DNA of 64,000 bases from Piromyces finnis finn (GCA_002104945.1 MCFH01000037.1:62001-126000); one strand, 5' to 3'. Shown: positions 3-13,932, counted from the stretch's first letter. Translations and numbers: made by a program. The notes: a model not told the origin generated them from the letters alone.

Positions 3-1586
3 AACGAATTAAAAGGTCTTGGTCAAAGATATGGATTTGATATTTCTAAGCCAGCTACAAATGCTAAAGAAGCCATTCAATACACTTACTTTGGCTATCT
101 CGCTAGTGTTAAGGATCAAGATGGAGCAGCCATGTCTTTTGGCCGTGTTGATTGTTTCTTTGATGTATACATCGAAAATGATATGAAGAAAGGAATTTTG
201 ACGGAAGCAGAAGCTCAAGATTTAATCGATCAATTAATCATCAAACTTAGATTAGTTCGTCATTTACGTACTCCTGAATACAATGACTTATTTGCCGGTG
301 ATCCAACATGGGTTACCATGGTTGTTGGTGGTATGGGAATAGATGGAAGACCATTAGTTAGTAAAACTTCTTATCGTATTGTTAATACTCTCAGAACTCT
401 TGGAGCAGCTCCTGAACCAAATATCACCGTTTTATGGAATAATAAACTTCCAACATCTTTCAAAAATTTCTGTAACAAAATTTCAATTGATACTTCATCC
501 ATTCAATATGAAAATGATAATCTCATGAACGATATGTTTGGAGATGACTATGCAATTGCCTGTTGCGTTTCACAAATGAGAATTGGAAAAGATATGCAAT
601 TCTTCGGAGCTCGTTGCAACTTGGCCAAACTTTTACTTTATGCTTTCAATCATGGTTATGATGAAAGAACAGAAAAGCAAGTCGGACCAGATTTCGGAGA
701 TATCAAATTAAATGAAGATGGATCTGTTAATTTCGAATCAGCATGGGAAATTTATGATAAAGCAATGGATTGGATTGCATGTCTTTATGTCAACACCATG
801 AACACCATTCACTACTCTCATGATAGATATTGCTATGAAGCTGTTCAAATGGCATTACACGATACAAATGTTCATCGTTACATGGCATTTGGTATTGCAG
901 GTTTCTCTGTCATTGTTGATTCATTCTCAGCTATTAAGCATGCTAAAGTATTTCCAATTCGTAATCCTGAAACAGGATTAACTACCGACTTCAAAATTGA
1001 AGGCGATTTCCCCAAATTCGGAAATGATGATGATCGTGTTGATCAATTTGCCATTGAACTCCCTAAAATATTCCTTGGTAAATTAAAGAAATATCCAGCA
1101 TACAGAGGAGCAGAACATACATTATCTATTTTAACCATTACATCTAATGTTGTTTATGGTAAGAAGACAGGATCCACACCTGATGGACGTAAAAGTGGAG
1201 AAGCATTTGCACCAGGATGTAATCCAATGCATGGTCGTGAAACTAATGGCGCAGTAGCTTCACTCAATTCCGTTAGTAAAGTTGAATATGAATATTGTAA
1301 AGATGGTATTTCCAATACATTTACATTTGTTCCTACCGTGTTAGGTAAAATTGAAAACGAGCGTATTATTAATCTTACAGGATTATTAGATGGCTACTTT
1401 AGTCAAGGCGGATTCCACCTAAATGTTAATGTTTTAGTTCGTGAAACATTAGAAGATGCCATGATTCATCCCGAAAACTATCCAAACTTAACCATTCGTG
1501 TTTCAGGATATGCAGTTCACTTTATTCGTTTATCACCACAACAACAAAGAGAAGTTATTGCCAGAACTTTCCATGAAACTCTTTAA
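3..1586 (+). CDS. pflB: Pyruvate formate-lyase (formate C-acetyltransferase, glycyl radical enzyme), 5'-truncated by the window edge
   Basis: The frame is open from position 3 ([26 protein letters not shown]...), upstream of the ATG at 132. It carries the active-site Cys-Cys (YAIACCVS) and the C-terminal glycyl-radical motif (TIRVSGYAV). No introns in the visible 1.58 kb. Confidence 0.97.
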
Positions 1587-2085: not shown

Positions 2086-3159
2086 TTATATAACTAAAGT
2101 GGCAATGTTCTTTGAATTATCGAATTTCCAACCTTTGCTCTTAGTGTTTTCAAAGGCCTTATACATATCAGTGTTTGTGAATTTTACAGTAAAAATAGCA
2201 GTTAAATCACCAGCTTTAACATTTCTGTATTTTGGATTGAAAGCGGTAATCCACCAGGCATCCTTACCCCAATTGTCCCATTGGTTAACAATTGTACCTT
2301 TAGTTTTGTGAGTTAAAGTTAAAGTCATTGGCATAGCAAGTGATTTTTTAACTTTCCAGTGTGAATTTTTGCTTGATCCACCGTAATAAATACCAAGTTC
2401 AGCACCAGCACCAAGATTAATATAGTCACCCTTCCAAGCCCAGAGTATATAATTTTCTCCATTGTAAGAGAACATTCCATTATTATTGTAATCCATACTA
2501 GTACCTAAATCAAATATGAAGTCGAAGAATTTATTGTATCCAAATTTAGATTGCCAGCAATCAAAGTCTGCATGATAAATGCCATTGCTATCTTTTTTCA
2601 TATCTAAAATCATGGCACCAAGTTTAGCAGTATCAATACCGAGTTTAACAGCAAAGTCATTAAGATTATGGATAATTGAAGAAACAGCAACTTCTACAAC
2701 ATCCTTTGCTTTATCTCCGACAGTGGAAGCAACATCTTTAACTCCATTTCCAACAGTAGAAGCAGCATTTTTAACACCATTTCCAACAGTGGAAGCAGCA
2801 CCTTTAACACCATTACCAACAGTAGAAGCAGCATCTTTAACACCATTACCAACAGTAGAAGCAGCATCTTTAACTCCATTTCCTACAGTGGAAGCAGCAT
2901 TTTTAACACCATTACCAACAGTGGAAGCAGCATCTTTGACTCCATTACCAACAGTGGAAGCAGCATTTTTAACTCCTTTTCCTACAGTAGAGGCTGCATT
3001 TTTAACCCCATTTCCAGCTTTAGAGACCGTTTTCTTTATTTTTTTTAAAATTCCTCTTTTTTCTATCTCAACAGAATTAGTTGGATAGGCATTAGCAACA
3101 TAGAGGTTAATGAAAATGCAAATAAATAAGAGTACTAAATGATGAGTGCGGAATTTCAT
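2086..3159 (-). CDS. Secreted pre-pro-protein (357 aa): signal peptide, KR site, nine 11-aa repeats, C-terminal domain homologous to the RHS C-terminal domain (DUF4474-like)
   Basis: Hydrophobic N-terminus ending VANA; EKR|G at aa 33-36; repeats GNGVKxAASTV at aa 49-147. The C-domain motifs YHADFDCWQ, WAWKGDYINLGAGAELGIY and WWITAFNP are shared with 6058-6807 and 11544-12224. The DUF4474 label is from recall of the WKGxY..GAE(I/L)GIY motif, not from a search. Confidence 0.88.
   Translation of the reverse strand: MKFRTHHLVLLFICIFINLYVANAYPTNSVEIEKRGILKKIKKTVSKAGNGVKNAASTVGKGVKNAASTVGNGVKDAASTVGNGVKNAASTVGNGVKDAASTVGNGVKDAASTVGNGVKGAASTVGNGVKNAASTVGNGVKDVASTVGDKAKDVVEVAVSSIIHNLNDFAVKLGIDTAKLGAMILDMKKDSNGIYHADFDCWQSKFGYNKFFDFIFDLGTSMDYNNNGMFSYNGENYILWAWKGDYINLGAGAELGIYYGGSSKNSHWKVKKSLAMPMTLTLTHKTKGTIVNQWDNWGKDAWWITAFNPKYRNVKAGDLTAIFTVKFTNTDMYKAFENTKSKGWKFDNSKNIATLVI
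2719..3015 (-). repeat. Coding 33-bp tandem repeat, 9 units (11-aa G[N/K]GVK[N/D/G][A/V]ASTV), followed by a degenerate 10th unit
   Basis: Read directly from the translation and DNA; units differ mostly at synonymous positions and at the N/D site. Confidence 0.95.
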
Positions 3160-3402
3160 TTTGAAACGAAACTAACGAATTTTTTTTTATAAACTTGTAT
3201 TTATTTATAATTTATTTATTTTTAAAAAAAAAGAAAGTAAAAAAAAGAGTTTATATATTTTTTTCTTTTTAATTTATCATATTTGTAATATATATTACAA
3301 ATAAGAAATAATATATATATTTAATTATTTTTTTTTTTAATTATAAAAAATAAAACATAAATTTTTTAATAAACTTTTTTTTTTTTTTTTTTGACTATAT
3401 TA

Positions 3403-3439
<37 letters not shown>

Positions 3440-6057
3440 ATAATTATTATTTTAAGCTTTTTATTTAATATTATAATTTGTTATAGCTTTCTTTATAATA
3501 TAGAAATAATATTTGTAAACATCTAATTCCATTATAACATATATTAATATTTTAATTATTATTATATTATCATTATTCTTGAATGTATGCAACTTAATTT
3601 AGGAACAAATTAATTTTTTAATTTTATAATAAAATCTATTAAATAGAATATTTATAATAAACATTAAATAACAAACACTGATACTTTCTTAATTTTATTA
3701 TATAAAAAACATTTATTTTTATATTAGATTAAATGATTTTCATTCTAAATAATTATTAATATTTACATATATTTACATATATATATTCTTTTATATATAT
3801 ACATGTGCTTTTTTTTATTAATATTATCTATTTCTATAACAAATAAAGTTATTTTTGAGTGATAAAACAATAATAATATTAATTATTTCCTATTTATGTT
3901 ATTAATAATTTTACAGAAAAAGTTTATTAAGCCATTATTTATAAAAAATGATAGATTTAACAATAAGAAATATTGTAATTGATTGATTGGTAAAAAATTA
4001 TATAAACTATATCTAAAAAAAAAATAAAAATTTGTTTAACAAAGAAAAATATAATATATAATATTAATGATTAATTAACCAGTTAACAAATAATAATGTT
4101 TTTGAAGTGGAATATTCTTTTTATAAACTTTTTTTTAATTAATTTTATTTATTTATTTTTTCTGCTATGAGAAATTTTTTATTTTGAAAGAATTAATGTT
4201 TTCATTTATATATATGTATTTTTTTTTTTTTTTTTTTTGTAACTTGAACACAAATAAGTATTGAAAAAGATGAGGAACAAAAGCTACAATTAAATTTTTA
4301 CTTATTAAGAAAAATTATTTATATATTTTCAAATATCATTTATAACATAATAACATGGTTACAAAAATTATATTAAAGGCTTATTAATTATTACATATGC
4401 CTTTTTGATATTTATATTAATATTTTTTTTAAAATTAAATTAAGAAAGAACCAATTACATTAGAGGCTTATCATTAAGTTGTATATTTATTTTATTTTGA
4501 ATATAATTATTTTTATTTTTTAAAACTAAAAATTATTATAATTATCTAGATAGTATTTAAAGAATTAATTTATTAATATTGTTTTCTTAGATTTATTTAT
4601 CATAATTACTATATATATAGTCTATTAATTGTTTTAATGTTTGAAAAACTATTAATGAAGAAAATAATAATTTTTTCTTATTTTTATTTTTAATTGGTAC
4701 ATAATTAATAATGAACAATTATAATTATTAATTTGATCATGGTCTTTTTTAACTTAATATTTTTTTTTTTTATAATGTTGGTTAAAATGGAGATCAATAT
4801 ATTAATATTTTAATTATTCTATGCTTTTTGGGGATTAAAGATTATTATTAAATGAGAAAAATATTAGAATTAAAATTGTTTTAAAGTGAAGCTTATGTGC
4901 ATAGTTAAATAAAATTATTAAAGAAAGTTGCACTATTTTTGAAAATCATATTAAAACATTAATTTATGATATTAAAATAATAAACTATATATAAAGTTAC
5001 TCTAATATTTCAATTATATAAAAATGGAAAGAATAACTTTTTTATTTTGTTATAAATTAATTCAAAATAAAACAAATTTTATTATGAAAAAATTTAGAAT
5101 ATTCTTTAGATTCTATTTTACAAGAATTAACATTAATTAATATTTTATATTTAATTATTATAAATGAAATAAACTTTTTTTAAATTACTTTTTTTTCTGA
5201 ATAAAAAATGTATCAGGAAATTTAAAATAATAATAAAAAATAAAATGTATAAATTAAAAATAAATTAATAATTGGATTAACAATTTTTAAAATAAAAAAA
5301 AATGTTCATTTTTATATATTAAGTAGAGAACCTATATCAATATTCATGTTCTATTGTACTTAGTCATCCTTATATTCAAAATCAAAATTGTTTTTTTTTT
5401 ATATTATCATATATACTTTTTTTTATTAAATATCAGCTTTATTAATTATTTTTATTATCCATAGAGTAATACTATTAAAAAGATTAGCTTCATTATTTTA
5501 TTTGAAAATTAATAAAAACTATATATATTTTAAATATTCTTATTATACTTATTTTATGAATAATTAATATAATATATAGATATATTAAATATTTTATTAT
5601 AATTAATGAGATCTTTTAAACCTTTTTTTTTAATATTTATCAGAAATTCAATAATCGTAATACACTTCATAATGAATTTTGATTATACCTCCAAAAGATA
5701 AAAGATTATATTTAATAATTATAATTTTTTATTTTTTTTATTATTTTATTATTTAATAAATAAATGTTTTTTTTTATTGAATAATTATTACATATATTTA
5801 TATACATATTGATTAATAAGTATGATTATATATAATTAATAAATATATAAATTGAATTTATATAATTTAATTTTTTTTAATAATATAATGTTTAAATATT
5901 AATATAGTTTTATGATAATATGATTATATTTATATGTTTTATATTTAATAATTTTTTTTATAATTTTATTATTATTTATTTTTATCCTTGTATAATATTA
6001 TATTAATAGAATATGTAGAGATATTTAATTCCCTTTATATCAATTCTATAAAATATC

Positions 6058-6807
6058 TTATAAAACTAAAGTAGCAGTACGAGTACTACTATTGAAACTC
6101 CATCCGTTTGGTCTTGTTTTTTCAAAAGCACTGTACATACCAGCATTAGTGAATTTAACAGTAAAGGTAGCAGTTAAATCATTGGCGTTAACATTCTTAT
6201 AATTTGGGTTAAAAGCAGTGATCCACCAAGAATCATTACCTCTGTTATTCCATTGATTAACAATAGTACCTTTAGTTCTGTGAGTTAAAGTTAAAGTCAT
6301 TGGCATAGCATGAGATGGTGCAGCCTTCCAATGAGAGCTTCTGTCTTTTCCACCCATGTAGATACCAAGTTCAGCACCAGCACCAAGGTTAACATAGTCA
6401 CCCTTCCAGGCCCAAAGAATGTAATTTTCCCCATTGTAAGAGAACATTCCATCATTATTGTAAGCCATACTTGTACCTAAATCAAACATATAATCATAGA
6501 AGTTGTTGTAACCAAAGTATTGTTGCCAGCAGTCAAAATCAGCATGATATACACCATTTTCATCTTTTTTCATGTTTAAGAAGAAAGCTCCATACTTGGC
6601 AGTATCGATACCTAATTTAACAGCAACATCATTTCCGGCATGAATAATATTATTAACACCATTAGAGATAGCATCTTTAACGTTATTCCAGAAACTATTC
6701 CAACCTCTTTTTTCAAGTTGGTTAGTGTAAGTTGGTGCAGCATTAGCAACAAAAATGTTAATGAAGCAAACAAATAAAGCAATTAATTGGTGAGTACTGA
6801 TTTTCAT
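6058..6807 (-). CDS. Secreted pre-pro-protein (249 aa), paralog of 2086-3159 without the repeats; free RHS-CT-like (DUF4474-like) domain
   Basis: Signal peptide MKISTHQLIALFVCFINIFVANA, then EKR|GWNSFW (KR at 6706-6711). Long near-identical blocks with paralog 1 (e.g. MPMTLTLTH.TKGTIVNQW). Intronless. Confidence 0.9.
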   Translation of the reverse strand: MKISTHQLIALFVCFINIFVANAAPTYTNQLEKRGWNSFWNNVKDAISNGVNNIIHAGNDVAVKLGIDTAKYGAFFLNMKKDENGVYHADFDCWQQYFGYNNFYDYMFDLGTSMAYNNDGMFSYNGENYILWAWKGDYVNLGAGAELGIYMGGKDRSSHWKAAPSHAMPMTLTLTHRTKGTIVNQWNNRGNDSWWITAFNPNYKNVNANDLTATFTVKFTNAGMYSAFEKTRPNGWSFNSSTRTATLVL

Positions 6808-9701
6808 TTTTGTTTGATTTAGTAATTACTTCAAGTAATTATTTTTTATTTTTTAATTTTTTATTTATTTAATTAAAAAGGTTGAAGGAATTTTTTCTTT
6901 AAATATTTTTTTTTAATATGGCTAATAACCTATTATAAAATATTAAATTATATATAAATTATATATTATAATATATGTATAATACACATTGTATATAAGG
7001 GATAAAAAGCATTATAATAGAATTTAATAAAAGTTTTTAATATATTTGTAACTATATATTAATTAAAATATTTTTAAGACATTTTATTAAAATTTCTTTA
7101 TTATTAAATTCATATTTATTATTTTTTTATAAAAAAGAGTAAAAATAAGTGTTAAAACTATAATAATAATACTCAATTTATTAATACAACAATACTAATT
7201 AATATGTTGAAAAGTATTATTAATTATATTTGTTTTTGTAATGAAACTTTAATTTATAATTTATTTTATATTAATCCTTTACAATTATTAATTTAATAGT
7301 AAGGAAAACTGATAAATTTAAATTACATTATACAGAATTATTAAATATAGAAATAAAATATACATCAATTATTATTTTGATTTATTATTAATTTTATTCT
7401 AATTATTATACATTGTATCAGTTTAATTATATTTAATATTTTTAAAAAATTTAAACATATTATTTTTTCATAAAATAAAAATTCCTTTTTTTAAAAAAAT
7501 AATTAATACAGTGAATAAAATAGAATAAAATATAAATAATATAAATTTAAATTTATAAAATTCATATGGCTTTTAAATGGTTTAAGAATATATTAAAAAA
7601 GTAAAAATAATAATAAATATAAAGCTTTAGTATTATATTTCATAGATTTAAATGATTAAGTATTTTCCAAATTTGACAAAATTAAAGCCATTGAGTAACA
7701 AAATTTTTATCAACCAAATATTACTTCTAACCAAATCATATATAATTTGTATAATTAGTTTTATTTTTTCAAGTAATACAAATACAAATATCAATATATT
7801 ATTATTAATAATAATCAAGTAATATCAATTATCAGTAGAACAATAACGATAATTAATATTACATTTTCTATTTCAAAAAAATTGATTTCATTAATCAAAA
7901 TCTTTTCTGAGTGACTAATAAATTAAAATATAATTATTTCGATTATAGAAACTTTTTTAAGAAAAATTGAAAAAAAAATATGTATATATTGAATCATTAT
8001 TATAATGATATTACAATTATAATATAATCATTCATTTTATTATATAATATTTAATATATATGTATTTTTTTTAATATATATATTCCCCATAAGAGTGTTA
8101 CTATTATGCTATTTATTTTAAAAGCGAAATATTAATAATTTTGATTTAATTATTATAAATAATTATTAATAACATACATATAAATATATAAGTGAAATAA
8201 TAAAAAATAAATAAATAAATAATAAATAAATTAACAATAATAATAACTATTTTATTATTTATTTAAATTTACGCATACTAATAATAAAAACAATGTAAAA
8301 GTGAAGCTAATTTATTAATTTATTACAAATCAACTGTTTTTTACAATATATGCTAATATTTTTTTTTTTTCGTTTTTGTTATTTTATCATTATTTACTAT
8401 TTCATTTAATACTTTCTTTCGTTTTTTATTTTAATATGTAAAAGTGCGTTAGTATATAGGCACTTTTCTATATTTATGCAATATCCATGATATCTATTTC
8501 ATGTATTTTTATTTATAATCTTTTTTTTTTTGATATTTTTTTTTTTTTTAAAAAGAAATTATTGGTAAAACAATTTTTTATCATTATTAACATAATTTTT
8601 ATTATTGTTATTTTAATTATTTTAATTAATATTTTTTATTAAAACAACAAAAAAAAATTAAATAAAAACTAAATAATAAATCTTAGAATATTCTAAACAT
8701 TCTATTTTGATGAATAAAATTTGGAATAATATTTTTTAATTATTTATAAAGAAATAAGCTTTTTTTTTTTATTATTAATTTTTCTTATAGCTCTAAAACT
8801 TAAACAAAATAGGATAATAAAGGAAAATAAGGTAAATTAAAAAATAAATAAAAAGTTGTTACAATAATAATTTAACTAATTATTAATTTTTATCTGCATT
8901 TCTATAATTTCTATATTATAATTATTGAAGAGTAAATAATGTTTTTTTTTTTTAAAAAAAGAGCAATTTTATAGGTTCTTAATTAATTTAAATAATCTTT
9001 TTTTTTTTGAGTAAAATAAAAAAATAAAATTTCTATTTGAATATATAAAATAATAAATAGTTTTTAATTTAATACGTCATTATATTTTAACAAATAAGAT
9101 ATATTTGAAATATAGAATTGTATTTTATGAATAATAAATATTTAACAATGTTAAATAAAATTAATTTTTAAATATTCCTTATCATAATACATTAAATACT
9201 TTTATTTTATTTTTATAAATAAATTTTATTTAACATGTAGAATAATAATTTTGTAAGGCAAACATGGATTAATTATATATTAAATATATAAATATTGTAA
9301 TTATTTATAATTATAATAATTAACTGTTACAAGTATTTTTTTTTTTTTTTTTTTTTTTTTGGTGGTTATGTACTTTTCTTTTTTTTAAGAACAATAGTAA
9401 TGTAGTAAATTTTAATATATTTATATATATTATATTATTATATTGTATTATTTAATGAGTAATTTAATATATGAAAATGATTGATTTTTGGCTTTGGTGA
9501 TAATACATATAAAAAAAGGTATAAAAGGGATAGAAAAAATATGTTTTTATTTAAATATTAAAACCGAAAAAAAAAAAAAGAAAAGAAAAGAAAGAAAAAT
9601 AAAAATAAAAGAAAAATAAAAATAAAAGAAAAAAAAAATAAAAAGTAAAAATAAATAATTAATTGAAATAAATAAAAAATAGAATATAAAAATATTAAGA
9701 A

Positions 9702-12224
9702 ATGCAATATTGCAATTTTTATACAGTAATATTTTTTATTATAAATTATATTACTTTTTCTGTTAAGGCTATAGATGACTTAAATAGTTATGATATAGCT
9801 CAAAATGTTAATGATTTATCCTATAATACAAAAGAAGAAATTAACCAAGATATCATTAATTCTTTAGAATCTAATAACTTTGTTGAATCTGTTGTTAATA
9901 CTACTACCTTTGAAGATGTTAATCTTTTGACTGATGTTAAAGAATTCGATAATGCTATTATCGTAAATGAATTCATGTATGAAAAAGATAAGGTTTATAG
10001 TTTTACCCACAATAACATCACTTACTCTTTTGAATATGAAGGAAACAATGTTATTAGAGTTAGCATTGGCGAAAAAACTTTTGTTGAAAATAGTTATGAT
10101 GGTAACATTATAACTTCAAGAAAATATGGAAATGGTGATGTTATTTCTTCTTTCTACGATAAAAATATTGGTAGATTGATTACTCAAAAAATAAATGATG
10201 TTGATTCTTACCAATGGACTTACAATGATAATGGATCTATTTCATCATTCATGGATTTAACTCTAAAGGATAAGATTGAATATATTTACAATGAAGCTGG
10301 TATTCTTTCTGAACAAGTTTCTACTTCTGGATTTGCTATTAGTTTTGATACAATTATTGATGATGGAATTGATACTGTAACCTACAAGTATGGTGAAGAA
10401 ATAAAGAGTAGAACTGTTAGCAACGATATTAAAACTATTTCCGATATTTCTGGTGATGGAGAAGAAACCAATTATTCTACCGAAATAATTGTTACTCATT
10501 TAATTTCTGATGATCAAGTTGTTACTAATAAAAATAATGATTTGATAGAATCCAAAACAATTTATAGTAATAATCAAAGTATCTTAAATACCGAATTTAC
10601 TTATGAAGATGAATTAATTAAAAAAGTTAAATATCAAGATGGTAAAACTATTCAATATTCCTATGATGAAAACTTCAAATTAATTGGAGTTTATAATGAT
10701 AATAAGTTAGTAAGTAGTTATAACTATGATCAACTTGGTCAATTAATAAGAGAAAACCATGCTGTCTTAGGAAAAAGTATTGTCTACAAATATGATAATA
10801 ATAGCAATATAATTTCTGCGGATTATTATGAATATAGTACCGGTGAATTATTAAATAAACTTTATTCTAAAGTATTTTCATATAAAAACATTGAATGGAC
10901 CGATGAATTAACAAATATTAATGGAGAAGAAATCCAATATGATCAATCAGGAAACCCACTTACCTACCGTAATAACATGACTCTTGAATGGAAGGCTAAA
11001 ACTGTTGTTTCAATGAAAAGTTCAGAATTCACTATTAATTATACTTATAATAACAATAATATTAGAACATCTAAAACTGTAAATGGTATTACTACTAAAT
11101 ACTATTTAGATGGAAATAAGATTATATTAGAAATTACAGAAGGTCAAAAAAAATGGTATATTTATGATGAAGAAAACAAAATTATTGGATTTATTTTCAA
11201 TGATAATACATATTACTTTGAAAAGAATATTCAAAATGATGTTACTCGTATCTTTAATAACAACGGAGAATATGTTAGTGAATATATTTACGATGCATGG
11301 GGTAATATTATTGGTATTTTAGGAGATGACACTATTGCCAGAGCCAATCCATTTAGATATCGTAGTTACTATCAAGATAATGAAACAGAACTCTATTATT
11401 TACAAGCTAGATATTACGATAGTTTTGTTGGTAGATTTATCAGTGCAGATATTTTCTTAGGAGCTAATGAAGGTGTTGATATCTATAATTTATTTGTCTA
11501 CTGTGGTAATGATCCAGTTAGTAGATATGATGAAACTGGTATGTCATGGAGTAGTTTCTGGAAGGCTGTTAAAAATGTTGTAAAGAAAGTAGTTTCCACT
11601 GTATTACATGTTGTTAATACTATTGCTGTTAAAATCGGTATTGATACTGCTGCTATTGGTGCTTTATTTTTAGATATGAAAAAAGTTAATGGGGTTTACC
11701 ATGCAAATTTTGATTGTTGGCAATCGCTTTTTGGATACACAAAATTCTATGATATTATATTTGATATTGGTACAAGTATGTTACCTAATACTGATGGTCG
11801 TTTTTCATATAATAATCAAAACTATATTTTATGGGCTTGGAAGGGTGATTATATCAATTTAGGAGCTGGTGCTGAACTTGGTATATATAAGGGTGGAACA
11901 AGTCTTGAATCATACTGGGCTGTCGATAAAAATTTAGCTATGCCAATGACTTTAAAGGTATGGAAAAATAGCAAACAAATTATAGATTGGACTGACACCC
12001 ATTGGTGGATCACAGGTTTTAATCCATCATATCTTAATAATGATGCTAAGAATTTAACTGTTCAATTCACTGTTCAATTTGATATTAAAAAGAATAGAAA
12101 TGACAAAAACATTGATGTAAACTTTAGTAATGGAATGTATTCCGCGTTCTGTGAATCTATAAGTTTATTAAAAACAAAATCATGGCAATGTAATGGAAAT
12201 AGAAAAGCTACTTTATCCTTTTAA
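9702..12224 (+). CDS. RHS/YD-repeat protein (840 aa) with N-terminal signal peptide, RHS-associated core and DUF4474-like C-terminal domain
   Basis: Signal-like N-terminus ending VKA; YD-type repeats (YSYDENFKL, YNYDQLGQL, YKYDNNSNI, YDQSGNP, YIYDAWGNI); core NPFRYRSYYQDNETELYYLQARYYDSFVGRFISAD...NLFVYCGNDPVSRYDETG (11346-11540). Intronless. Confidence 0.93.
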   Translation: MQYCNFYTVIFFIINYITFSVKAIDDLNSYDIAQNVNDLSYNTKEEINQDIINSLESNNFVESVVNTTTFEDVNLLTDVKEFDNAIIVNEFMYEKDKVYSFTHNNITYSFEYEGNNVIRVSIGEKTFVENSYDGNIITSRKYGNGDVISSFYDKNIGRLITQKINDVDSYQWTYNDNGSISSFMDLTLKDKIEYIYNEAGILSEQVSTSGFAISFDTIIDDGIDTVTYKYGEEIKSRTVSNDIKTISDISGDGEETNYSTEIIVTHLISDDQVVTNKNNDLIESKTIYSNNQSILNTEFTYEDELIKKVKYQDGKTIQYSYDENFKLIGVYNDNKLVSSYNYDQLGQLIRENHAVLGKSIVYKYDNNSNIISADYYEYSTGELLNKLYSKVFSYKNIEWTDELTNINGEEIQYDQSGNPLTYRNNMTLEWKAKTVVSMKSSEFTINYTYNNNNIRTSKTVNGITTKYYLDGNKIILEITEGQKKWYIYDEENKIIGFIFNDNTYYFEKNIQNDVTRIFNNNGEYVSEYIYDAWGNIIGILGDDTIARANPFRYRSYYQDNETELYYLQARYYDSFVGRFISADIFLGANEGVDIYNLFVYCGNDPVSRYDETGMSWSSFWKAVKNVVKKVVSTVLHVVNTIAVKIGIDTAAIGALFLDMKKVNGVYHANFDCWQSLFGYTKFYDIIFDIGTSMLPNTDGRFSYNNQNYILWAWKGDYINLGAGAELGIYKGGTSLESYWAVDKNLAMPMTLKVWKNSKQIIDWTDTHWWITGFNPSYLNNDAKNLTVQFTVQFDIKKNRNDKNIDVNFSNGMYSAFCESISLLKTKSWQCNGNRKATLSF

Positions 12225-13293: not shown

Positions 13294-13932
13294 TCAGTTA
13301 ATGTCAAGTTTAAAGATCCAATTTTTTAGATTTTTATTATTATAGGTTAAAGTATCGTGGTGATATATTTCAAAACCATTCTTTTTATAAAAGAAAGTAT
13401 TTTTTTCAGAATTGGTAATCAAGGTAAGATGCTGACCTCCTCTTTTTTTAACAAAAGGAATAACACATTCATTAATCATACGACTACCAATGTTTTGACC
13501 GATACATTCTTTCATTACAGCAATACATTCTAAATTAAAACATGGATTAGTTTTAGCATATTCTAAACGAGGTGCGTTGCAATGATCCATCATATCTAAA
13601 AATCCAAAGGTATTTTTAAAACCACCATTAATTAATATTGATAGAGCACCATATAAAAAATATCTTGGTACACTTGGTTCTTTATGCTTTTCATCTTGTA
13701 TCATTGAAACACATATAATTTTATTATCACGTTCAGCAACCATAACAGTATCATTTGTCATTGCATCATAAAGTTGAACACTCATAATTGCCTTGTTAAA
13801 TTTTTGTTGTTTTTTTTCTGAACTTGTTTTCCATATTTGATAAACTGAATACTCTTTGAATGCACTATATACAACTTCAAGACATTCGTCAAAATCCTTT
13901 TTGGTTGCTACTCTATAACTAATATTACTCAT
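13294..13932 (-). CDS. GNAT-family N-acetyltransferase, intronless, bacterial-like
   Basis: N-terminal YRVATKKDFDE; motif A-like LECIAVMKECIGQNIGSRMI; motif B-like LITNSEKNTFFYKKNGF. Confidence 0.85.
   Translation of the reverse strand: MSNISYRVATKKDFDECLEVVYSAFKEYSVYQIWKTSSEKKQQKFNKAIMSVQLYDAMTNDTVMVAERDNKIICVSMIQDEKHKEPSVPRYFLYGALSILINGGFKNTFGFLDMMDHCNAPRLEYAKTNPCFNLECIAVMKECIGQNIGSRMINECVIPFVKKRGGQHLTLITNSEKNTFFYKKNGFEIYHHDTLTYNNKNLKNWIFKLDIN

Follow-up and report, generated by a model that had tools for sequence, protein, structure and literature searches.

We examined a 64,000-nucleotide stretch of the genome of the anaerobic fungus Piromyces finnis (GCA_002104945.1, MCFH01000037.1:62001-126000; hereafter the window) that holds a gene for an RHS protein, a type of protein that carries polymorphic toxins in bacteria, together with two genes for free copies of its C-terminal DUF4474 domain. 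We propose, with a probability of about 0.6, that this is a domesticated bacterial polymorphic-toxin locus in which the tip of the RHS protein was duplicated and whose products would be used against bacteria. The window is very AT-rich (GC 10-30% in 2-kb bins). A scan for open reading frames (ORFs), followed by translation, resolved the block at 2086-12224 into three uninterrupted ORFs that encode proteins of 840, 249 and 357 amino acids (aa), all packed within 10 kb (Table 1). The RHS gene and the 249-aa gene are divergently oriented, with 2.9 kb between them.

The 840-aa product matches TIGR03696 (Rhs_assc_core) at aa 530-614 with 64.8 bits against a cut-off of 32.5, and its YD/RHS repeats are matched by PF05593 (RHS_repeat) and TIGR01643. 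DUF4474 (PF14751) follows at aa 663-812 (E 2e-18). Both free paralogs are also above the Pfam cut-off for this domain (E 1e-15 and 2e-13); the scores of the three products are 66.9, 57.9 and 50.7 bits against a gathering cut-off of 23, for matches that cover only profile positions 15-164 of 240. In BLASTP comparisons, identity with the RHS tail is 51% for the 249-aa protein over the full length (E 4e-75) and 64% for the 357-aa protein (E 8e-70), and the two free paralogs share 74% (E 1e-108). The likeness among the three tails is far above chance. We also searched the P. finnis genome as a whole (56.5 Mb in 232 contigs, the window being 62-126 kb of contig C164), and these three genes were the only matches to DUF4474, just as the RHS gene was the only match to the Rhs core. 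An initial annotation, made from the sequence alone, had described an intronless RHS gene whose last 225 or so residues after the core are homologous to the mature regions of two intronless neighbors, the nearer of them divergently transcribed. Every aspect of that observation that we checked was confirmed, and the shared motif blocks that it quoted are real and include residues conserved throughout the family.

The AlphaFold2 model of the RHS shell is confident over aa 80-620 (predicted local distance difference test score, pLDDT, about 90) and matches the shells of Rhs, teneurin and TcC proteins, with Foldseek E values of 1e-27 to 1e-22. When aa 1-620 served as the query, only bacterial relatives were found, namely RHS proteins of 1060-1290 aa with 42-46% identity from gut and rumen Clostridia, including Ruminococcus flavefaciens. 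These proteins have N-terminal TSP3 repeats and assorted tails, and the toxin domain differs among even the closest shells (AHH is one example). The alignment with the fungal protein begins past their N-terminal ~400 residues, and this region, with its TSP3 repeats, is absent from the fungal RHS. In a comparison of 30 RHS proteins, the core residues R570 and D610 never vary, and D583 is conserved in at least 90%; judged by their spacing, the three would correspond to the Arg/Asp/Asp set on which the C-terminal self-cleavage of Tc/Rhs proteins depends (PMC8455502). The core ends in the motif DETGM, which occupies the DPxGL-type position and is the same in bacterial carriers of DUF4474, and self-cleavage is predicted directly after M614. 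The fungal protein has the features of an Rhs/YD toxin: a YD shell, a TIGR03696 core and a variable toxin domain right after the core.

Hundreds of relatives of the tail were found in bacteria, both as RHS tails and as orphan tail modules (45-57% identity). In contigs limited to one genome per species, 57 loci with such a tail were found, almost all of them in gut or rumen Bacillota/Clostridia, and the best came from a metagenome-assembled genome of a sheep-omasum Clostridia bacterium (54% identity). The DUF4474 family forms 1799 clusters at 50% identity, and a profile search of 1.84 billion representatives returned only clear members of it, with no link to a known family. We built a tree of 69 sequences, consisting of the RHS tail, 23 eukaryote-type free copies and 45 bacterial sequences. 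The RHS tail and all 23 free copies share one side of a branch with support of 99/99; within this eukaryote clade the RHS tail is the earliest branch, and the free copies group together (99/93). Three length differences were also compared. Behind GTSM, 142 of 142 bacterial sequences have a loop of 6 residues, where most eukaryote copies, the RHS tail among them, have 7. Behind GIY, the loop measures 5 residues in 103 of the 142, compared with 8 in the RHS tail and 8-9 in the remaining eukaryote copies. Ahead of WWIT, the free copies have a segment of 16 or 19 residues, and the RHS tail one of 14, the length seen most often in bacteria. The RHS tail therefore looks intermediate, since two of its loops are of the eukaryote type and the segment preceding WWIT still has the bacterial length.

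It could be argued that the free copies do not stem from the fungal RHS tail at all, the RHS and free genes having arrived by independent transfers or as one block that already contained orphan modules. Ciach et al. do list them in separate clusters (360 and 64), as unrelated transfers, and bacterial rhs loci do have orphan tail modules; moreover, one subclade of free copies (P0011, P0013, P0015 and P0251) has the bacterial 6-residue loop. However, bacterial orphan modules normally hold different toxins, the three fungal genes lie within 10 kb of each other, and both the 99/99 clade and an insertion that most free copies have in common with the RHS tail, and that none of the 142 bacterial sequences has, speak against either version. 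We therefore regard such a history as quite unlikely.

The junction between leader and toxin domain in the free copies also bears on their derivation from the RHS tip. Following M614, the RHS protein reads S-W-S-S-F-W, which aligns with the G-W-N-S-F-W that follows K33-R34 of the 249-aa protein, and the BLASTP alignment of the RHS tail with the mature 249-aa protein begins at residue 2 of both. Bacterial tails have x-W-x-x-[IVF]-W after a DxxG[LMA] motif, and an E[KR]R site is present at the release point in all fungal-type homologues. The Kex2-type KR site thus stands at precisely the position of the predicted RHS self-cleavage site, which suggests that the free genes were built by swapping everything upstream of the cleavage point for a secretion leader with a Kex2 site. 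Both the signal peptides and the processing by Kex2 are predictions read from the translations; for ORX45938.1, the RHS protein, the supplement of Ciach et al. likewise gives the annotation 'SP, extr' (PMC11291939). The initial annotation had supposed that a bacterial, possibly Firmicute-type, rhs gene was acquired by the fungus and that its payload was then duplicated and re-wired to the fungal secretory pathway. The first part is supported by the Clostridia relatives of both shell and tail, and the second by the single clade that joins the RHS tail with the eukaryote-type copies, the loop length seen in none of the bacterial sequences and the KR register.

Three intronless genes whose nearest relatives outside anaerobic fungi and other rumen eukaryotes are bacterial might also be taken for contamination or an assembly chimera. 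The locus, however, lies at 62-74 kb, deep inside a contig of 541 kb (541,120 bp). The GC content at third codon positions (GC3) of the three genes is 0.17-0.28 versus 0.12-0.22 in neighboring ORFs, and the flanking intergenic DNA has 12-14% GC, which is neighbor-like, whereas GC amounts to 35-51% in the bacterial loci that carry this domain. The proteins carry predicted eukaryotic signal peptides and, in the free copies, Kex2 leaders. Orthologues of the free copies are present in other fungal assemblies, namely those of Piromyces sp. E2 (two adjacent genes), Neocallimastix californiae and N. lanati (ORY14481.1). Because of the contig size, the GC3 values and the orthologues, we do not consider contamination or a chimera, which the initial annotation had named as a possible refutation, to be a serious option, and its probability is close to nil. 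The genes are of bacterial origin and stably resident in a eukaryotic genome. In Piromyces sp. E2 (locus L005, KZ150889) the two adjacent DUF4474 genes are flanked by runs of N, which hide any RHS gene that might be there.

We next consider what accompanies DUF4474 in bacteria. One metagenomic contig of 282 kb carries a full rhs gene and, behind it, a series of orphan tails. Every tail has a small downstream gene, and the one that follows the DUF4474 orphan encodes a DUF5104 protein. At about 50 bacterial loci, 52 downstream ORFs begin no more than a few dozen bases from the stop codon of the toxin gene; 46 of them were DUF5104-like, and Pfam confirmed the assignment for 6 of 6 tested. These pairs occur in gut Clostridia (L006:8001-9382, L009:6001-7380 and L011-L061). 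Nearly all of the DUF5104 partners begin with a lipoprotein signal and Cys, the first example included if a TTG start is used; the nearest solved relative is an uncharacterised protein, 4r1k (E 1e-4). A model of the complex between one toxin tail and its mature DUF5104 scored 0.83 (best control, 0.01), a level reached by 51 of 78 solved complexes and by 2 of 108 mismatched pairs, with contact agreement of at least 64% among runs and a partner pLDDT of at least 86. The model supports binding of DUF4474 by DUF5104, and together with the conserved adjacency it supports the toxin-immunity pair that we propose here.

Since this immunity partner would be a surface-anchored lipoprotein, the toxin probably acts on the bacterial envelope from the outside. 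With such an external target the fungus would need no immunity gene, and indeed none was found: no ORF and no DUF5104 lies directly downstream of the RHS gene, and no DUF5104 was detected in the window or in the P. finnis genome by a search that was positive in 2 of 2 bacterial control genomes. A lipoprotein partner in bacteria also strengthens the idea, raised in the initial annotation, that the locus may be an antibacterial weapon. In the complex model, the GTSM loop forms the centre of the interface, which also contacts the GG after GIY. The eukaryote-specific loop insertions, at 11796-11816 and 11895-11918 in the RHS tail, coincide with the modelled immunity-contacting residues, and they would fit an escape from bacterial immunity. 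In the searchable literature, no paper names DUF4474 or DUF5104.

The model of the mature 249-aa protein (pLDDT 88.5, predicted TM score 0.84) consists of a long N-terminal helix (residues 2-30), a small alpha/beta part and a beta-sandwich. A sequence-profile search of the Protein Data Bank (PDB) with DUF4474 found nothing, and the ESM Atlas yielded only DUF4474 clusters, a feature search that excluded PF14751 giving no usable match. The fold searches barely probed the N-terminal alpha/beta part (residues 30-80, with H54, C59, Q61 and D71). Among 170 sequences, Q61 and D71 are invariant, and K101, E112, H54, N106 and D103 (D or N) nearly so; this conserved polar set (H/Q/D/K/D/N/E) sits among invariant Trp, Tyr and Gly, and all three fungal copies keep every residue conserved in the family. 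A Cys-His peptidase was entertained and is weakened by C59, a residue that only 88% of bacterial sequences have and that is replaced by Gly in the Neocallimastix copy. We put the chance of an envelope-directed enzyme or a tight ligand binder at roughly even, and favor it over a pore former because the strictly conserved polar set lies among many tryptophans and tyrosines.

If the toxin instead disrupted membranes or formed pores, its N-terminal amphipathic helix and the lysine-rich repeats would be the membrane-seeking parts. Residues 2-30 are predicted to be helical, the immunity protein would be extracytoplasmic, and the best structural likeness, weak as it is, was to the rim of the MspA porin (Z 6.1). 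However, a Z of 6 is within noise, and the candidate membrane-inserting hairpin is the most conserved part of the family, as is typical of an active site. We consider a pore former unlikely, with a chance well short of even.

Several points weigh against a domesticated antibacterial toxin. DUF4474 is a domain without known activity. Foldseek gave no significant match in the PDB (best E 0.065), and the best scores of VIA-align against 48,161 chains (Z 6.1 for the MspA rim and 5.7 for a velvet domain) are within noise. The leaders and Kex2 sites were read by eye. The RHS gene was found only in P. finnis, and it could therefore be a disappearing relic: with the shell as query, no second fungal RHS was detected among 5.8 billion proteins, counting predicted proteins of 0.55-1.75 times the query length. 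As for expression, the locus consists of predicted genes only. Four sequencing runs from three studies of one organism, whose kind could only be guessed (they may be RNA or poorly assembled DNA), contain 0.45-0.54 of the words sampled from 6001-12000, a region with a coding share of 0.51, and AT-rich spacers also drop out of DNA assemblies. In addition, bacterial DUF4474 is in some cases fused to dockerin and CBM_4_9, as would suit an extracellular module that binds or processes carbohydrate and that would serve the fungus on plant fibre or its own wall rather than as a weapon. The conserved core is rich in Trp and Tyr and has conserved Asp and Glu, and the C-terminal beta-sandwich is weakly like CBM56. 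However, RHS and PAAR-like toxin scaffolds dominate among the carriers, the module is paired in 46 of 52 downstream ORFs with a lipoprotein modelled to bind it, and a Pfam search of the fungal copies found no fungal dockerin (CBM10) and no carbohydrate-active enzyme domain, so that such a role seems improbable. The non-RHS carriers in bacteria (PAAR-like DUF4280, VWA, CBM_4_9 and dockerin) are also consistent with an exported toxin module.

In the history that we favor, domestication of a bacterial toxin, an rhs gene with a DUF4474 tip would have been donated by a Clostridia bacterium (Ruminococcus/Oscillospiraceae type) of the rumen or gut. In the fungus, the ~400 N-terminal residues and the downstream immunity gene would have been lost, and the RHS gene would have acquired a eukaryotic signal peptide and the fungal base composition. 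The tip may then have been copied as a stand-alone gene, in which a signal peptide, a pro-peptide and a Kex2 site took the place of all that lies upstream of the self-cleavage point, so that processing in the Golgi should free the same mature end as RHS autoproteolysis. Later duplications would account for the several paralog lineages in Piromyces and Neocallimastix. If, in bacteria, the anchored DUF5104 lipoprotein neutralises a toxin that reaches the envelope from outside, secreted fungal proteins may harm neighboring Gram-positive bacteria without any delivery machine, and a fungus that lacks the target could dispense with the immunity gene. Secretion, processing, envelope target and antibacterial use are all inferred.

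The eukaryote-type copies seem to extend beyond the fungi. A 2.4-kb sequence from a JGI metagenome (3300011008; L068:1-2428) has CCCCAAT / ATTGGGG repeats at both ends, like a ciliate gene-sized chromosome, and encodes a membrane protein (P0252) in which Ephrin_rec_like cysteine repeats are fused to DUF4474. P0252 and eight other AT-rich sequences nest in the fungal clade beside the 357-aa lineage, and this placement suggests a transfer between fungus and ciliate in the rumen. All of these observations could be joined into a two-mode antibacterial system, with a contact toxin carried by the shell and diffusible copies released by Kex2, in which the loop insertions would be adaptations for immunity escape and from which the module would have moved between rumen eukaryotes, to be fused to a ciliate surface protein on a ciliate chromosome. 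We consider this combined view rather unlikely to hold in all its parts.

Table 1. Features of the RHS/DUF4474 locus, in coordinates of the window.
Feature	Position	Strand	Evidence
RHS polymorphic-toxin gene, intronless, 840 aa, ORX45938.1	9702..12224	+	ORF, Pfam and NCBIfam matches
Predicted eukaryotic signal peptide, aa 1-23, hydrophobic core, ...SVKA/ID	9702..9770	+	Read from translation
YD-repeat shell, aa about 80-529	9942..11288	+	AlphaFold2 model, Foldseek
Rhs-associated core, aa 530-614, R570/D583/D610, ends ...DETGM, predicted self-cleavage after M614	11289..11543	+	TIGR03696
C-terminal DUF4474 domain (putative toxin), aa 615-840	11544..12221	+	PF14751
Free DUF4474 paralog, predicted secreted, 249 aa: signal peptide, pro-peptide, KR, toxin domain	6058..6807	-	ORF, Pfam, BLASTP
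Kex2-type dibasic site K33 R34 of 249-aa paralog	6706..6711	-	Translation and BLASTP register
Free DUF4474 paralog, predicted secreted, 357 aa: signal peptide, KR, lysine-rich 11-aa repeats, toxin domain	2086..3159	-	ORF, Pfam, BLASTP
Kex2-type dibasic site K34 R35 of 357-aa paralog	3055..3060	-	Translation
33-nt tandem repeat, 9.1 copies, encoding GNGVK(N/D)AASTV linker from pro-peptide to toxin domain	2716..3016	-	Tandem Repeats Finder

The RHS protein is equated with ORX45938.1 on the basis of the length (840 aa) and the contig size (541,120 bp) given for that entry in the supplement of Ciach et al. (PMC11291939). From the order of accessions, the 249-aa and 357-aa paralogs are probably ORX45937.1 and ORX45935.1, respectively. 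The copies of the 33-nt repeat in the 357-aa gene have 87% matches according to Tandem Repeats Finder, and similar repeats are found in orthologues. Two further ORFs border the locus. One kilobase downstream of the RHS gene, an intronless ORF on the minus strand (13294-13932) encodes a 212-aa GNAT acetyltransferase with neighbor-like GC3. On the other side, the translation of a long exon at 132-1586 (plus strand), read by eye, resembles the C-terminal part of pyruvate formate-lyase; if this identity is correct, it would fit a native anaerobic-fungus neighborhood.

The bacterial Rhs/YD class of polymorphic toxins was described by Zhang et al. (PMC3482391) in 2012. Like bacterial loci with orphan arrays (L006, for example), the P. 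finnis locus combines a YD shell, the core Arg/Asp/Asp, a post-core toxin and extra tails nearby. It differs from them in its fungal host, its eukaryotic signal peptide, the loss of the bacterial N-terminal region and the absence of an immunity gene, and its extra tails, unlike silent bacterial orphans, are complete genes whose products are predicted to be secreted and released at a Kex2 site. The tick Dae2 protein (bioRxiv 10.1101/2020.04.10.036376) offers a parallel, in that an interbacterial toxin acting on the envelope was acquired by a eukaryote and is secreted without an immunity protein, as would be the case here. Dae, however, derives from an amidase effector of a type VI secretion system and has known chemistry and demonstrated activity, whereas the fungal case involves an uncharacterised domain and has kept the shell as well. 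Gall midge rhs genes (PMC8455502) and teneurins are likewise bacterial YD shells in eukaryotic genomes with the cleavage residues kept. The midge genes, in contrast, go back to insect-associated Gammaproteobacteria or phage, with eukaryotic cells as their presumed targets. Teneurins have lost toxicity, and neither group has free secreted tips. The closest case in setting is the PoNi toxin-immunity gene, which Neocallimastigomycota acquired from Ruminococcus (bioRxiv 10.1101/2020.10.15.341461): phylum, kind of donor and arena of conflict are the same, but PoNi is a defensive immunity gene and the P. finnis locus would be the offensive half without one.

The transfers themselves are already public. 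In the supplement of Ciach et al. (2024), ORX45938.1 is listed in Cluster_360 and ORX45937.1, ORX45935.1 and ORY14481.1 in Cluster_64, all four entries being flagged as bacterial xenologs with a Clostridia donor (PMC11291939). They appear there as two unlinked clusters, in tables only, with no word on toxin systems, shared ancestry, cleavage register or an immunity partner, and our literature search found no paper connecting anaerobic fungi with RHS or polymorphic toxins. New in the present work are the connection of the free copies with the RHS gene, the exchange of one release mechanism for another, the pairing of DUF4474 with the DUF5104 lipoprotein and the proposed envelope target.

To our knowledge, transfers of bacterial weapons into eukaryotes are few, and the intermediate steps are usually lost. 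Here, a single 10-kb locus keeps the ancestral form, a putative toxin behind an RHS shell, beside derived free toxins, and with both forms side by side the route of domestication can be read directly. Our analysis also gives a first functional frame for two domains, as DUF4474 (about 1800 clusters) would be a toxin and DUF5104 its lipoprotein immunity partner. For the fungi themselves, the locus points to a possible, testable means by which they may compete with fibre-degrading Clostridia in the rumen.

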